A DNA stretch of 62,849 nt, filler included, from Calcarisporiella thermophila CBS 279.70 (lineage: Eukaryota; Fungi; Calcarisporiellomycota): the NCBI RefSeq assembly GCF_041956535.1. It is 9 parts of 9 records of this genome, joined end to end, with 100 filler letters (N's around TTAATTAATTAA, not from the genome) between each part and the next. Parts side by side here need not be neighbours in the genome. Positions count along the whole stretch, not along the records: positions 28,003 to 35,065 come from NW_027192250.1; 8 more parts are not named here. The stretch is one strand, 5' to 3'. Below the pieces are notes generated by a model. That model saw nothing but the letters and a program-made list of their open reading frames with translations, made no database searches and was not told where the DNA came from. Positions within the stretch are counted from its first letter, which is position 1. Every line of letters begins with the position of its first letter. The position numbers were made by a program, and so were the translations under genes. Below, in pieces: positions 28,003 to 35,065 of this stretch.

Positions 28003-29519
28003 AATGATGATGCATCATTGTACTGTACGAAGGTAGCTAAAGATGAAATGTGCTTCAGTTAAATAAAAAGCGGTTTCTGTAACTATACAATGATCAACCA
28101 CGCTTCTTCAACGTATTAGTGGTAAATATATGGGGCTGTCTGGTGCTAAACGGTGATTATCTCATTTCAAGTTTTGATTTCTGATCATTATGAAGAACAT
28201 CTGTTCACTCTACTCACTGTCACGACGTTATTTTTCCCAAAAACTGCTTCACCTAGTGATAATTATGCTTTATTTTAACCTATATAACATGATTAACTTT
28301 GCTTCGCACTGATTTTTACTGTCCAGCTTTGTTCAGTATCTGTTAAATTACCATTGCTATTTGTTTTCTGAACCTTTCTTCTATTTTTCTTTATTATATA
28401 TATATTTATTTTATCAAATAAATAAAATATTTCTCTACCACTCAGCCTGATCCACTCGTACTCTTAACGATATATCCACTTTTCTTTTTATATTACACCC
28501 TCTCCTCTCTGAATAAATTTCTCATCTTCTTTCCCTCAGTATTCTCTCAACGTTTGGAAGTACAGGTGTCTTAACCTATAAGCCAGCTTAGTTTGATTGG
28601 AATTTTATTTGCTCATCCTAGTTTAGATATCAACAATAAACTTCCTTGTATCTTTAATACTCTTAAATCACATGCGCAATAGCATATTGTATCGCTGCAT
28701 TATACTTAAGCTAAACATACTTTAGTATATACAATACTGTATAATTTGGCGTATACAGTAAACCCCAGAATTGTTATTGGCGACTTCAAGCTTTTATATA
28801 TCCTCTCCTATATCCAGATTAATAATTCTTTGATGTACTTTCTGAGTCGATTCACCCGTAATAATATTGCAGCTAATGCCTGCTTTATATTGACTCTACT
28901 ATTCAATATCTTTCGATTTTCTCACGAAAGGCTATTGATTAGAGATAGAGGTTATTGCTCGAGACCCATCTGGTAGTGAATGATGTAATATGTGGCGGCA
29001 CAAGAATAGGTAGACTAAGTTGATCTAGAAAATAGATCATATATTAAAAGAAGTTTACGAATTATGAATTATCTCACAATAATTAAGGTATTTTATTGCA
29101 CAGATGACCCTACTGTAACATTCTCATTTACTGATAGACATATTTGAATCCAATTCTGGACATACTCGAAATATCGTATGGATCATCTGTTTTCCTCTAC
29201 TTGGAAGTCGTTCAATGGTATCCATTGACTATTTCCTCGTATGCTATATTTTATACTATGTGATGCAGCACTTGGATTTTATCCTTATCGCGGTTGAATT
29301 TAATATAAATTATTTTTGCTATATCCAATCACAACGCTCGATCTGACCAATCGCATTTACACCCAATTTGGGTGGTAAAAGGTTTGGTGGGCCGGAAATG
29401 CAGCACCCGAATTAGGCGAACCGAATTAAAAGGTCCGAACTAGGGGGTCCGAACTAGGGAACGCAAATTAGTAGGCCCAAAAATGGTTGGACCCGAATTA
29501 GGGGACAGTTGGATGCGCC
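28003..29519 (-). mobile_element. Possible decayed DNA transposon (MULE-like) with terminal repeat array
   Basis: 14-bp subterminal array near 29360-29505 and a GG-start terminus. Weak frameshifted TTN..E.W-like trace near 28100-28130. Confidence 0.3.
29361..29505. repeat. 14-bp periodic degenerate repeat (core CCGAAYTAGG)
   Basis: Cores at about 29407, 29421, 29435, 29449, 29463, 29477, 29493, with weaker copies upstream. GC-rich island in AT-rich DNA. Confidence 0.85.
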
Positions 29520-31690
29520 TGCCACCGATACACTTCTATTTATAAAATAGAAATCGTCGCCACAACTACCCATCACCACTATACCGCTCCCTTTATATTT
29601 ACATGGAAGTTGAATTCCTGTTCACTAATTTCATGATCTCAATCTTTTCAAATCAAAATCAAACCATCTTGTACTGCAAAACACACAGTTTTATATGGTT
29701 TCTCTCTCGCTTATAAATTCACGAAAGCCGTCGTATATTTTAAGCACCCCTCAGTAGTTCAATCTACATTATAATTGCCTATTGATTTAATTTTTATACT
29801 GCACTGGAACACATTTTTTGTTCCCACACAAATATATATATAATAGCTGGTTGGACATCAATCGATCGGTTTTGCTCTGTAGCAGGACAACATATACGAT
29901 AGTTGATAATACCATAGAATGACCTTCAAGTGCAGGGTCACCGAGAATGCACACAACATTTTGTGTAAAATATGTAAATCAGTCTGAGAAGGTTTATTAT
30001 CTTTGTAAAGAATGTCTTTATTATTCCTACTTTTAATTCCAACCATTCCATTATTTTCTATATAATGCTTCTAATTTTAGTTTTTGATTCCTCACCCGTG
30101 TTTTCTATCTTGATCTTAACCTGCCCAATTTCGAATCATAACATTTTAGGTATCCTGCATGCTCTTTGCGAAAATAAATGACACTGTATGTGGAAAGCGC
30201 TTATGTACTGTAAATTCTACAATCCGTATTTATATACTGTGGTTGTTTATTATTTCTAGAATCCATCGCCACATCCTTAGCTCAGTTAAATGGTCTCATG
30301 ATAAACCCGACTATCCCTCAGACTCTTCCTTGTAATTACAGTAAATATTTTACATATTGAAGCTAGTAGTAATACTTTAGAATTGTAATAACGAACGTTC
30401 AACGATTCTTTTACGAATTTGGATCTGATATTAAACGTAAGCACGTAAGCAATGCGGAATCGACCGAATTTCAACTGTTCATTAATGGAGTTCATCAAGT
30501 GTACAATCATAGCACTGTAGATTAAGTACAGCTGGTATAGTATCTTCAAAATTGTAAAAGTTAAATTGATTAAAATCCATCGATAGAATCACGATTTACT
30601 AGAGTATATTTTATCTTCAATGCCCCAATCTTCTCTCTATACTACTTGTAGCAATGGTTACACTCTTTTCATCATCGCAAATTAAAGCTAAATAGTGAAA
30701 AAAAAAAAAATCAAATCAAATCAAATCAAATGGTTTCTGCACACTAGAGCACTTATAGTCTATGTAATGTGCGTCGATTAAAATTGGTACATTTCCAGTA
30801 TTAACTCAATAACTCAATACCCATTTAAATCGATATAATATTGATAAGAATATTATTAATAAAAAATACAGCTCACAGGTTATCGTCAACAATATTCTCC
30901 AGCCATTGATAAAGTGTCGATTCATTTCTGCACATATTACATTTCCTATAGGTGGCGACGTGTAGGGGTATATTGAGGATCTGAATTTACCCCAAATGCT
31001 CATTAAAAAATAGCCACTTTGTTGTCGACCCAAGCATTCATCCGAACTGTGACGTTCATCCAAACTTGTACTTTGGCCAAGTCTGTGTACGACACTACCT
31101 GAACTCTCAATTGAACTCTCATCCGAACTGAGGCCTTATTCATCGCATAAGCTTGTCCGAATGGTGGCTTCATTTGTGTACGGGAAGTATACGAAATTCG
31201 CACGGGTTCCGCCTGTGATTCAAGGATATTTATCGTGCTTAGTATATGTTTAATATGATATTTTTTTCTTGAGAAAGCGTATAATAAAAATAAGAAAGCA
31301 GCTTTGCTGCATTTTCTCAACACACTGAATAACGAAAATCCATATGAAACAAACTGTTGTTACTTAACTAATACTTGTTCTAGTTTATTATTACGCTTTG
31401 TCTTGGTCTTGTCTACCTACAGTATTTATTACCATTTTCAAATCAACCCACTTTTTTAAAGATAGTAGTGGATATACTGTACTGTAATCATAAATATCAC
31501 TTTGCTCACAAAAAATAATATGGAAGAGTCGTACTGATATTGTGGTACACCTTTCATAATAATAATACAGTATTTGATAATCGAGAATATTGGGCTTTCG
31601 CAGTTTAGTCCTTACACCACCCTTTTCTATTTGATGGCCTCAAACACATTGGTACTCTTGCTTTTATGCCCCTATCAAGAGGTTCCTCGG

Positions 31691-31698
31691 TATATAAA
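31691..31698 (+). promoter_or_regulatory. TATA box upstream of retroelement ORF1
   Basis: TATATAAA about 98 bp before the ATG at 31789, followed by a pyrimidine-rich leader. Confidence 0.5.
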
Positions 31699-31788
31699 AG
31701 TACGGATGCCTCAAAGCTCCCTCGCTTTCCTCACTGTTTTTTCTATCCCCTCTCTTGAGAAGACCTTTGCATTTTATTTCCATACAAT

Positions 31789-33561
31789 ATGACAGTCGCG
31801 GCAGATTCCCCAGTATTTGTCGCATTCATCAAAAGAATGGATGATAAGTTTTACAGCCAGAAGGATAGCCTCAAGTGCTTAAACTGTGACAAAACTGGAA
31901 AGCTGGGGACTAATCAAGACAGGCTCAGACGCCGCTATTACCAGTGCACCAACTGTCATAAAACGATTCACCGCGCGGATATGGCCCGTCGCCTTGGCAT
32001 ATCAGTTCCACCTGAATTGGTTACGAGGACTCGGGAAAAGTATTTTGCTGCCGGACCAAAAGGGAATAGTACCTCCGAGCAGCCTAGTGTCCAGCAGCGC
32101 CTTCTCCGTCCTAGCAGTGCATCCACCCCAGTGCTCCAAACGCTTTCCTCCAGGGAAACAGCCATTCATCACGCCATTCGCTTGCGTGAATCCGCTACGC
32201 GAGAGTCCTGTGAGTCGATCGAGGATGAACAGATTCATGAAAATAATGGCGATGAGACAGCTCAACCCACGGTTCCTGTTTCGTCTCTTCCCGGAGTTGA
32301 ACCAACTATGGAGCTTAGAACGCAGGTTGCAGCCCTAGCCAGTAAGGTAGAAGAGCTCGAAAAGCGGCTTCAGGATCAAGCTCATCAACACGCAAGAGAA
32401 CTTGAAGAAAGAAATCTCCAACACGAAAAGGAATTCGAAGAAAGGAATCTCCAGCACGAAAAGGAACTTGAAGAACGAGATCTCCAATACGCAAAAGAGC
32501 TTGAAGAGCGAGGGCTTCGTTATTTGGAGCTGATTAAGGAGAAATCCTTTGAGCGAGAAAAAGAACTTGAGGAGCGATACATGGGGGAGTTTGAGGAGCT
32601 TATACAGGAGCATCAACGCGAACTTGAAGAGCAGTCCGTCAAGTACGTGAAGCAAATCGCGGAATTAAAGAAAAGCGCAGAAAAAGGGACTCCAGCTGCG
32701 CAAGCATCCTCCAGACGAACCTTGAACGATTCGAGCCCTGATCACCAACCAATCAGGGCTAACCCGCCTAAGAAGCCTACGGCAAGCAAGCCTTCTTACG
32801 CGGACATCGTGAAAAGGTTGAAGATTCCGGAAGAAGATGAGAAAAGCTTCTCCACATCATTAAAGGTGCTCCACCAGAACTTACGCCCTGAAGATGCCTC
32901 CATGTCTGAGGTCGATCGCCGCCACAATCTTCGTAGGATTTATGTGACTGGTCTTCCGTTCATGCGTCTTGGAAGTCTGCGTAAGCACCTGTATAATCTC
33001 AGAGTGAGATTATCCAATGTTTACAATCTTGCTTACATTGGAAGACATACAGTGGAGTTCCTTGTGGCGGAGAGCTATTACTCATCTCTTGCTCGAAGGT
33101 TCTCGGCCTTGCATCTCCGTGTGGCGCTGAATTACGACCCCGAGAGGGCCCAAGATCCAAACGCGACGGATGAAGTGGTAGCCAAAGTAAAGGCCGCTTT
33201 CTTGAAAAGACTTGCAAGGACTAGTGAACGCTCTCCAAGCCACATTGTCCGAGAATACTTTTCCACGTGGACCAAAGCGATTCAGGATGCTACGGCCGAA
33301 GCTCCCCCAGTCTCCGCAATAATCTCTCAGCCCGTCTCTGCTTCAAACGCGGAATTAGGTACTAGATTAAACACCAAGTGCCGAATTCGAATTGTACTAA
33401 TAGAAATCTATGCTACTGTATTTGTTATAGGTGCCAGCCAAAATGGTCCTGCTGCAGCCATTCCGCAAGCAACCACGGCTACAAGCTCCCACACTCCCCA
33501 ACCTGAAGACCCCCCAATGGAGGAAGTCATTAGCATTCCAGATATCCAATCCTCTCAATGA
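31789..33561 (+). CDS. Non-LTR retrotransposon ORF1 (N-terminal C4 zinc ribbon, coiled coil, RRM-like domain)
   Basis: CLNC...CTNC; 11-aa repeats; SYADIVK; RRIYVTGLP...TVEFLV. Stop overlaps the ORF2 start (ATGA). Probable intron 33359-33430. Confidence 0.8.
   Translation: MTVAADSPVFVAFIKRMDDKFYSQKDSLKCLNCDKTGKLGTNQDRLRRRYYQCTNCHKTIHRADMARRLGISVPPELVTRTREKYFAAGPKGNSTSEQPSVQQRLLRPSSASTPVLQTLSSRETAIHHAIRLRESATRESCESIEDEQIHENNGDETAQPTVPVSSLPGVEPTMELRTQVAALASKVEELEKRLQDQAHQHARELEERNLQHEKEFEERNLQHEKELEERDLQYAKELEERGLRYLELIKEKSFEREKELEERYMGEFEELIQEHQRELEEQSVKYVKQIAELKKSAEKGTPAAQASSRRTLNDSSPDHQPIRANPPKKPTASKPSYADIVKRLKIPEEDEKSFSTSLKVLHQNLRPEDASMSEVDRRHNLRRIYVTGLPFMRLGSLRKHLYNLRVRLSNVYNLAYIGRHTVEFLVAESYYSSLARRFSALHLRVALNYDPERAQDPNATDEVVAKVKAAFLKRLARTSERSPSHIVREYFSTWTKAIQDATAEAPPVSAIISQPVSASNAELGTRLNTKCRIRIVLIEIYATVFVIGASQNGPAAAIPQATTATSSHTPQPEDPPMEEVISIPDIQSSQ
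32398..32530 (+). repeat. 33-bp (11-aa) coding repeat, about 4 copies
   Basis: ELEERNLQHEK / EFEERNLQHEK / ELEERDLQYAK / ELEERGLRYLE. Confidence 0.9.
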
Positions 33562-35065
33562 ATAGAAACATGACGCCCACTCTCAATACAACCAATGAGC
33601 CAACCAAATTGGCTCTAAGGATTGCTTTCATGAATGCTAATGGACTGCCTCAGCAGAAATTCAGAATCCTCTCGTCACTCATTCCCTCTCATTATGACAT
33701 CATATTCATTGCCGAAACCTGGTACGTCGACTACGATGCGATGCTCCAACATCCAGCAACATACCTCCACACCCCTTTCCCTTCATACCGCGACTATGGG
33801 ATCCCCGGTCGCCAGCACGGCGGACTTTTGGCCATGGTGGATCCTCGACTTCACCCTCAAATCACACAAAACAACATTACTGAGTATTCCATCCTTTTCA
33901 CCCTTAACTCCATAAGAATATGTGGCGTCTACTTTCCTCCGAGTATGTCAGTGGTAATATAATATATACCGAGTACAAAAATTCAAACAGTACCTAATAC
34001 AGCATCTATTATAGGCAGACATTCCTCGTCATCTCCCCAGCCAACCCGCGGTCATCATGGGTGACATCAACACCAAGTTTGACGGGCGACAAAGGGGGCC
34101 ACTAGAGAGAATTGACCTGTTTTGCGACTATGTGGCCAAGTGGTCCCTGTCACCTCTGACATTGGAGGCCGAGGAAAAAGGCCGGAACATGGTGGACCAC
34201 ACGTTTGTTCATTCGGATCTCGTCATGAATGTAAACTATTCTGCAATTGATCCCCCCGTGGACACCGACCATCTCTATCTTCTGCAGCTGGTTGTCGAAA
34301 TTCCAGTTGAGAACAACGCTTTTCGTGGCCTGCCAAGCCAGGCGAGCATTCCCCGGTATTATCTAAAGTATTTGGAGGATGCACCAACATTGAGGCTCTT
34401 CCAGTCTACCTACTCGCACTTGACTCGCACACTCACCCAACCTCTGGCTAATCTTGCTACCTTTTTCGCCAACTCGCAACCAGAGGAAGCCCAGGAGGTG
34501 ATAGAAGAAGCGGAAGGGCATCTTCTCCATGCCATCCAACTATGTGCAGAGTCGATTCTCGGCACCTACCGTCCTCAAGAGCGCCGGCAAGATCCCGACC
34601 ATCTATTTGAGCATCTAAAAACGTGTAGAAATACACATGATGCTCTACGGGCACTAAAAAGGGCACAGAGAGTCAATGGGATGAAGGGTTACATTCAGAG
34701 CAAGGATCCAGCAAAGTCCCCGATGGAAGAAGCAAGGGAGCACTACTCACGCGTTTTCCAATATCCCATTGGCGTGCAAGACGATTCCCCTCCTCCACTA
34801 CCTCTCGCCAGTACTCTCGAGCGTAAAGAGGAGGTCGCAAGCTTCTTTTCCTCGATAGATATCATTGCCTTCATCCGCTCATATCCCCAGCAAAAATCCT
34901 GCGGAGCCGATGCAATCCACACCAAGCTGTTGGTGGCTTTAACCGATACAGACTTTCCGCACCATCTTGCCTCCCTATTCAAAGCCTGTGTCATGCTTGG
35001 GTGCACGCCTAAAAGATGGAACTCCAGCGTGATCTTCCCGATTCCAAAATCAAATAGCGCGGCAA
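33558..35065 (+). CDS. Non-LTR retrotransposon ORF2 (APE + RT N-terminus) split by a 61-nt intron, cut by contig end
   Basis: FMNANGL, IFIAETW, GVYFPPSMSV|ADIP...IMGDIN, VDHTF, TDH; then KSCGADAIH...LASLFKAC...TPKRWNSSVIFPIPK. Intron 33954-34014. Confidence 0.88.

Follow-up and report, generated by a model that had tools for sequence, protein, structure and literature searches.

A LINE of the fungus Calcarisporiella thermophila with two putative sense-strand introns, one of them dividing the ORF2 endonuclease

The window considered here is a stretch of 62,849 nucleotides from Calcarisporiella thermophila, a thermophilic early-diverging fungus of the phylum Calcarisporiellomycota, in which nine parts of the genome are joined end to end; positions count along the window unless another sequence is named. 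Positions 28003-35065 are the entire 7,063-bp scaffold MU987623.1 of assembly GCA_041956535.1. On it lie the two open reading frames (ORF1 and ORF2) of a long interspersed nuclear element (LINE), that is, a retrotransposon of the class without long terminal repeats (LTRs), and each frame contains a short AT-rich segment resembling a spliceosomal intron (Table 1). The open coding sequence of this copy consists of ORF1 and 1.45 kb of ORF2, as suits a young or selected copy; both inserts fall within a single coding region of 3.3 kb that is otherwise open. Two genes are annotated by NCBI on the scaffold, VTP21DRAFT_10258 (protein model P0001, 566 aa) and VTP21DRAFT_10259 (P0003, 422 aa). The flanks are AT-rich and gene-free (34% GC in the non-coding flank), and scans of the scaffold against Rfam and for tRNAs gave no match. 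The two ORF2 exons were searched and aligned separately, and spliced forms were taken solely from the database models P0001 and P0003.

Table 1 Features of the element on scaffold MU987623.1 (window positions)
Feature	Position	Strand	Remarks
AT-rich stretch at the upstream end of the repeated unit; candidate for a long 5' untranslated region (UTR) with internal promoter	30582..31788	+	Homology to L003/L007
TATA-like motif GTATATAAA	31689..31697	+	Read from the sequence; ~92 nt upstream of the ORF1 ATG
ORF1	31789..33561	+	590 aa unspliced, 566 aa in NCBI model P0001
72-nt intron-like segment in the ORF1 tail	33359..33430	+	GTACTA..TACTAAT..TATAG; P0001 removes exactly these bases
ORF2 exon 1, N-terminal half of APE endonuclease (N, ETW, YFPPS motifs)	33558..33953	+	Alignment to relatives
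61-nt intron candidate, phase 0	33954..34014	+	GTAATA..CTAAT..TATAG; borders of the original prediction
76-nt alternative intron candidate, frame-restoring	33943..34018	+	GTATGT..GCAG; used by P0003
ORF2 exon 2, C-terminal endonuclease half (GDIN, VDH, TDH), linker and first reverse transcriptase (RT) motifs	34015..35065	+	Open to the scaffold end

The stop of ORF1 and the start of ORF2 overlap as ATGA. Read unspliced, ORF2 ends after 134 aa at the TAA 33960-33962, two codons into a 61-nt insert that lies within the endonuclease and has 26% GC, compared with 47-51% in the flanking coding sequence. The length of the insert is 1 mod 3, and the A of its CTAAT branch motif is found 17 nt from its 3' end. 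Removal of the 61 nt restores the frame in phase 0, joining ..GVYFPPSMSV to ADIPRHLPSQPAVIMGDIN.. (ADIPRH...VIMGDIN); the coordinates, stops and join on which the original prediction relied were all verified. The nuclease residues are divided by the insert, with N, E (ETW) and Y (YFPP) in exon 1 and GDIN, VDH and TDH in exon 2, and weak Pfam matches to Exo_endo_phos and Exo_endo_phos_2 were obtained on both halves. Exon 2 reaches the first RT motifs (SCGADAIH..) where the scaffold ends, so that the RT domain itself is seen in the relatives and not here. The exon-1 frame is closed by the TAA already mentioned and the exon-2 frame by the 3' site itself, whose TAG (34012-34014) lies directly upstream. 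Since both frames are thus closed by stops within the insert, neither frameshifting nor readthrough can bridge it, and only removal from the RNA (or from the DNA) joins the two exons. As judged from the reading frames, splicing or some other removal of RNA is the sole route to an endonuclease-RT from the MU987623.1 copy, in agreement with what had been proposed.

The nature of the element was established from its relatives. An exhaustive search with exon 2 gave 351 relatives, mostly of ~1,000 aa, in which the match starts near residue 120-135. Relatives carry an endonuclease in addition to RVT_1, the latter being present in those aligned over the full 350 aa of exon 2, and among solved structures human LINE-1 ORF2p (PDB 8sxt/8c8j) matches them best. 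A relative on the metagenome contig L002 has an uninterrupted 1,000-aa ORF2 and a homologous ORF1 that overlaps it. Residues 7-119 of this ORF2 are matched by exon 1 and those from 133 onwards by exon 2, the latter at 31% identity over 345 aa. By homology, the element is an APE-type, L1/Tad-like LINE, and its assignment to the APE-type non-LTR retrotransposons in the original prediction is upheld. The nearest likeness is to other fungal LINEs of this group (such as L002, L005 and P0005), whose ORF1 measures 500-620 aa and combines a coiled coil with an RRM-like domain, and whose ORF2 of ~1,000 aa joins an APE endonuclease at its N-terminus to RVT_1; the ORF1/ORF2 overlap is conserved in relatives, as ATGA or as a short stretch of 8-10 nt. 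Penelope-like elements consist of a TERT-like RT with a C-terminal GIY-YIG endonuclease, whereas the C. thermophila element has an N-terminal APE nuclease and relatives that match L1 ORF2p best; a Penelope-like identity was therefore rejected. The retention of introns after retrotransposition is regarded as a hallmark of the Penelope-like group (PMC8557442).

The interruption of the endonuclease sets the C. thermophila copy apart, since the relatives (~14) are without an insert at either site. All 14 relatives examined for ORF2 (L002 and 13 others) are continuous through the insert site, and the ORF1 segment is absent from the tails of L002 and L004. Hence, the search for the same intron positions in relatives, which the original prediction had called for, points to both inserts being lineage-specific, as far as can be seen among the relatives examined. 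Five relatives whose annotated proteins begin at the intron position (P0020, P0052, P0145, P0045 and P0098) were considered as candidates for a same-site intron and rejected, the late starts being due to start choice or 5' truncation. L005 is one continuous ORF of 1,290 aa for which the gene caller had picked a later start; L006 lacks its 5' part and runs without a break through the insert site as YYPPSMNAAD; and the other three late-start relatives include YxPPS. A second LINE family of the same clade is present in C. thermophila itself, on the 2,976-bp scaffold MU987641.1 (L004), where an ORF1 tail and an ORF2 (P0005, 37% identity to exon 2) have a uniform GC content of 45-63% and no AT-rich inserts. 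The annotated start of P0005 is ~35-40 residues later than in relatives, and the N-terminus of its endonuclease may be missing or lie in another frame.

The relatives also bear on the borders of the ORF2 insert. In the original prediction the intron was given as 61 nt; these borders do restore the frame and fit the relatives best, but a second frame-restoring pair, 76 nt apart and used by P0003, had been overlooked. In relatives, 18-22 residues separate the motif Y-x-P-P-S-[LM] from GDIN. With the 61-nt borders PPSM is preserved and the loop has 19 residues; with the 76-nt borders SMSVAD is dropped to read YFPPNIPRH, which costs the conserved S behind PP and leaves a loop of 14 residues. The aligned relatives favour the 61-nt borders, and the exact borders, 61 or 76 nt, are ambiguous. 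A calibration on host introns was attempted with a neighbouring Crinkler gene, but its intron solutions were ambiguous, with a single obvious AT-rich intron of ~77 nt.

The protein encoded by ORF1 begins with a CxxC..CxxC zinc-ribbon-like motif (a weak GRF-like Pfam match), continues with a coiled coil (32354-32630) made up of seven diverged copies of a 33-nt (11-residue) unit resembling ELEERNLQHEK, and ends in a P/S/T-rich tail. It also contains a conserved domain common to the ORF1s of L004, P0002 and L005, for which a structure model (predicted local distance difference test score 74) gave an RRM-like beta-alpha-beta-beta-alpha-beta core with two additional helices; no significant match to this domain was obtained in the PDB by fold search or in Pfam. 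A protein search with ORF1 returned P0001 and one distant metagenome relative and nothing else, and a protein search with the C-terminal part gave no match.

The segment in the ORF1 tail has 32% GC and a TACTAAT branch motif 30 nt from its 3' end. It had been described as a 72-nt, frame-preserving, intron-like segment, and exactly these bases are removed in P0001. The segment is in frame and free of stops, so that splicing would be optional for ORF1; the 24 residues that it encodes are an insertion relative to the ORF1 tails of L004 and L002. It is also found, with its GTACTA start and the region of the branch motif, in an old copy on another scaffold (85% identity), which is described below.

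Both inserts thus begin with GT and end with AG, and both combine a short AT-rich body and a T-rich 3' part with a branch motif suitably spaced from the 3' end; for ORF2 as for ORF1, the intron-removed product is colinear with intron-less homologs. The resemblance to spliceosomal introns noted in the original prediction is also borne out by the annotators, who modelled introns independently at both places. We therefore incline, with some reserve, to the reading that the scaffold represents the 5' two-thirds of a young, otherwise intact L1/Tad-like LINE copy with two real sense-strand introns of the spliceosomal type.

Several points weigh against this reading. A look-up of sequencing runs for this stretch returned none. 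The scaffold ends inside ORF2, with the bulk of the RT and the 3' end of the element off the scaffold, which bears on overall intactness. The donors of the 61-nt (GTAATA) and 72-nt (GTACTA) segments deviate from the consensus at +5/+6, the G that is usual at +5 being absent. If the consensus donor at 33943 is paired with the first AG that could be used (34014), 72 nt are lost and the product is out of frame and truncated, so that a productive mRNA needs either the weak donor or a skipped AG. The NCBI models P0001 and P0003 are ab initio and not transcript-based, as follows from the false last intron of P0003. This intron (~34930-35015, with a GTGGCT donor, followed by a frameshifted 13-residue exon to the TAG 35055-35057) is a prediction artefact at the scaffold edge, the alignment of relatives supporting an uninterrupted frame. 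The ORF2 insert is known from one copy, since a 98.6%-identical fragment of ORF2 lies wholly downstream of it and the old copies are cut short at 33429. Finally, the cis-preference of LINEs predicts that spliced rather than unspliced RNA is copied.

Some of these points equally suit a different account, in which the 61 nt are a private insertion that has killed the ORF2 of this copy, the ORF1 segment is merely tolerated, nothing is spliced, and active copies elsewhere are uninterrupted. The weak donors, the ab initio nature of the annotators' models and the failure to find the ORF2 insert in another copy (the copies reached do not cover the site) are all in line with it; moreover, the stop-free ORF1 segment needs no splicing, the variable loop between PPS and GDIN leaves slack for a chance frame-restoring GT..AG pair, and intron-like signals may be a by-product of AT-rich sequence. 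It fits less well that both inserts run from GT to AG at a length typical of short introns, with the branch motif CTAAT or TACTAAT placed 17 and 30 nt before the 3' end and a 3' part rich in T, or that removal of the 61 nt costs and adds no coding sequence relative to ~14 relatives. Nor would the 1.05 kb of ORF2 past the insert, which are open, be expected to have stayed so for long once ORF2 had been killed. A 30-nt block surrounding the branch site is also common to the two inserts (shuffling, p about 0.02); this argues against a private insertion and may reflect either a common branch consensus or a common origin of the inserts. A private insertion is a serious possibility, though we consider it the less probable outcome.

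The element probably extends further upstream than originally thought. It had been taken to start at 31691, but the repeated unit begins near 30582, ~1.1 kb further upstream: the stretch up to the ORF1 ATG is shared with L003/L007 (scaffold MU987613.1) at 88-98% identity, and in both the homology begins at ~30582. The 5' edge of the element is thus probably near 30582, ~1.2 kb upstream of the ORF1 ATG. The upstream TATA box of the original prediction is present as a motif, but it follows from the extent of the homology that it is internal to the repeated unit. It is usual for LINEs to have a long 5' UTR and an internal promoter.

Some smaller features were observed in this region. Within it, 165 nt (30637-30801) holding A13 and then (TCAAA)4 are missing from the otherwise colinear MU987613.1 copy; they may represent a small retroposed insertion resembling a short interspersed nuclear element (SINE), or a deletion in the MU987613.1 copy. 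In the AT-rich flank, a GC-richer island (29375-29510, 45-47% GC) consists of CCGAA[TC]TAGG-like units in repetition (two of them, ACCCGAATTAGGCGA and ACCCGAATTAGGGGA, lie 86 nt apart), and a related motif, TCATCCGAACTG, occurs three times at 31038-31137 within the upstream region of the element.

Other copies were surveyed on MU987613.1 and in protein and metagenome collections; no 3' end, tail or target-site duplication fell within the copies reached. On MU987613.1 (L003/L007), one copy matches 30582-33145 at 80-91% identity, an inverted piece runs from 33282 down to 32805 (89% identity), a direct piece covers ~33204-33429 (85% identity) and contains the 72-nt segment, and a separate 582-bp fragment of ORF2 matches 34112-34693 at 98.6% identity. 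An apparent internal duplication in the MU987613.1 copy proved to be a scaffold gap of Ns. In the protein collections, a search with exon 2 for further copies returned P0003 and P0004 alone, and exact look-ups of the unspliced ORF1 and of the exon-1 ORF gave no match; a metagenome scan for close relatives gave 600 pattern matches, none of which was confirmed.

These copies bear on the proposal, one of several in the original prediction, that ORF1 and ORF2 are a domesticated pair; as a host gene or pair of genes, they would have acquired their introns in the usual manner of genes. The ORFs are intact, gene models were called here, which is not expected for a repeat-masked region, and no near-identical full-length paralog was present in protein collections, all of which would suit a host gene. 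Against this, at least three other copies or fragments are present in the genome, one of them 98.6% identical and the others decayed; the overlapping bicistronic layout typical of transposons is retained; the flanks are AT-rich and without genes; and the short unplaced scaffold ends inside ORF2, as assemblies do at repeats. The sequence belongs to a multi-copy family and not to a single domesticated gene, and domestication is regarded as very improbable.

The history of the old copies is informative with respect to how the segments were transmitted. Compared with each other over 431 codons of ORF1, the copies gave a synonymous divergence (dS) of 0.48 and a ratio of nonsynonymous to synonymous divergence (dN/dS) of 0.34; for the other pieces, dS was 0.17-0.26 and dN/dS 0.29-0.49. 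The value of 0.34 implies that part of the divergence accrued under selection, in functional lineages that already bore the ORF1 segment. The inverted and direct pieces (L007 11388-12236) overlap by ~79 bp and have a GAAAAG microhomology at their joint; this layout is that left by twin priming in the course of target-primed reverse transcription, which is suggestive. If this reading of the joint is right, reverse transcription acted on an RNA that still held the 72-nt segment. Mutation of the old copy by a process like repeat-induced point mutation (RIP) was considered and rejected, transitions in the two directions numbering 103 and 82.

The old copies were later disturbed by other elements. 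At a TA inside the 72-nt segment of the old copy, near the end of the segment, a Tc1/mariner element (L007 12235-13867) is inserted; it has 105-bp terminal inverted repeats (93% matching) and a DDE_3 transposase frame with an internal stop. When L007 was followed past this insertion toward the ORF2 of the old copy, no LINE sequence was found beyond it, and the unrelated sequence to its right indicates further rearrangement afterwards. The direct piece in L007 also contains an extra AT-rich insert of ~146 nt at ~33225, flanked by ACTAGT. The surroundings of the old copies on MU987613.1 are rich in transposons: a Ty3/gypsy-type pol is present there, as are two Tc1/mariner genes of the DDE_3 type, with a Crinkler-domain gene (L007 15271-17400) beside them.

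Retention of the ORF1 segment in diverged copies could also have come about without any copying of unspliced RNA, if intron-bearing copies spread as DNA through segmental or ectopic duplication in a repeat-rich region, with the introns gained once in a resident copy after its insertion and retrotransposed progeny being intron-less. This would agree with the cis-preference of LINEs, and the copies do have in common 1.2 kb of non-coding sequence ahead of ORF1, part of which precedes the TATA-like motif; those on MU987613.1 are rearranged and lie among other transposons. Such upstream sequence is equally accounted for by the long 5' UTR and internal promoter usual in LINEs. The dN/dS of 0.34 between the ORF1s of the copies indicates lineages that were functional after the split, and the old fragment with the layout resembling twin priming contains the 72-nt segment. 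Spread as DNA is judged quite unlikely.

For the reading of a LINE with two real introns, the following scheme is proposed. A single bicistronic RNA would be produced, from which ORF1 could be translated with or without its in-frame 72-nt intron, and ribosomes would re-initiate at the ATGA overlap to reach ORF2. The full endonuclease-RT would arise solely from RNA from which the ORF2 intron had been removed in a frame-restoring manner (61 or 76 nt), and unspliced RNA, or RNA with the 72-nt mis-pairing of 33943 to 34014, would give a truncated protein. Since the donors GTAATA and GTACTA are non-consensus, splicing is probably partial, and partial splicing would leave unspliced RNA available for reverse transcription. 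Reverse transcription of such RNA would explain the presence of the ORF1 segment in diverged copies. That the unspliced RNA is indeed the copied template is suggested by the retention of the ORF1 segment alone and is at odds with cis-preference; we regard it as improbable. It is similarly doubtful that a LINE lineage has carried coding introns through target-primed reverse transcription, with ORF2p made from a minority spliced isoform and acting in trans on unspliced RNA. As to their origin, the introns may derive from host introns that reverse-spliced into the LINE RNA, which was then reverse-transcribed.

The same working principle is known from other retroelements. In retroviruses and in intron-bearing LTR elements (e.g. 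Ogre of legumes), weak splice sites give both a spliced mRNA and an unspliced template RNA, as is proposed for the C. thermophila LINE. These differ from it in having LTRs, an integrase and cytoplasmic reverse transcription, and for a LINE the cis-preference makes such a division of labour problematic. LINEs are copied via RNA, so coding introns are expected to be purged within one generation. Splicing of L1 uses cryptic sites and harms the element rather than being needed for its expression, and the intron of Tad is reportedly not needed to join the ORF2 reading frame. In contrast to Tad and L1, splicing in the element described here is predicted to be obligatory for the endonuclease-RT. Introns have been identified in sense-strand transcripts of Tad (Neurospora crassa) and L1, according to a paper that cites Sewell & Kinsey 1996 for Tad and earlier work for L1, and that also describes antisense introns for TART (PMC1636488). 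Tad, a fungal LINE with an intron in its sense-strand transcript, is in this respect a likeness to the C. thermophila element. In a non-exhaustive literature search, no description was found of an APE-type LINE whose ORF2 is readable solely after splicing.

The significance of the finding depends on which account is right. If the ORF2 insert is private to the MU987623.1 copy, it would be a minor curiosity, a tolerated or killing insertion. If the introns are real, the element would bear on the strictness of cis-preference in LINEs and on splicing as a gate of retrotransposition, or as a feed to surveillance by RNA interference (RNAi); RNAi surveillance of poorly spliced transposon RNA is described for Cryptococcus (summarised in PMC7175516). 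The element would also bear on how new introns arise: an origin by reverse splicing, if true, would follow a long-postulated route of intron gain, on an RNA that is routinely copied back into DNA. Action in trans on unspliced RNA, if true, would amount to a retrovirus-like division of labour that breaks cis-preference.

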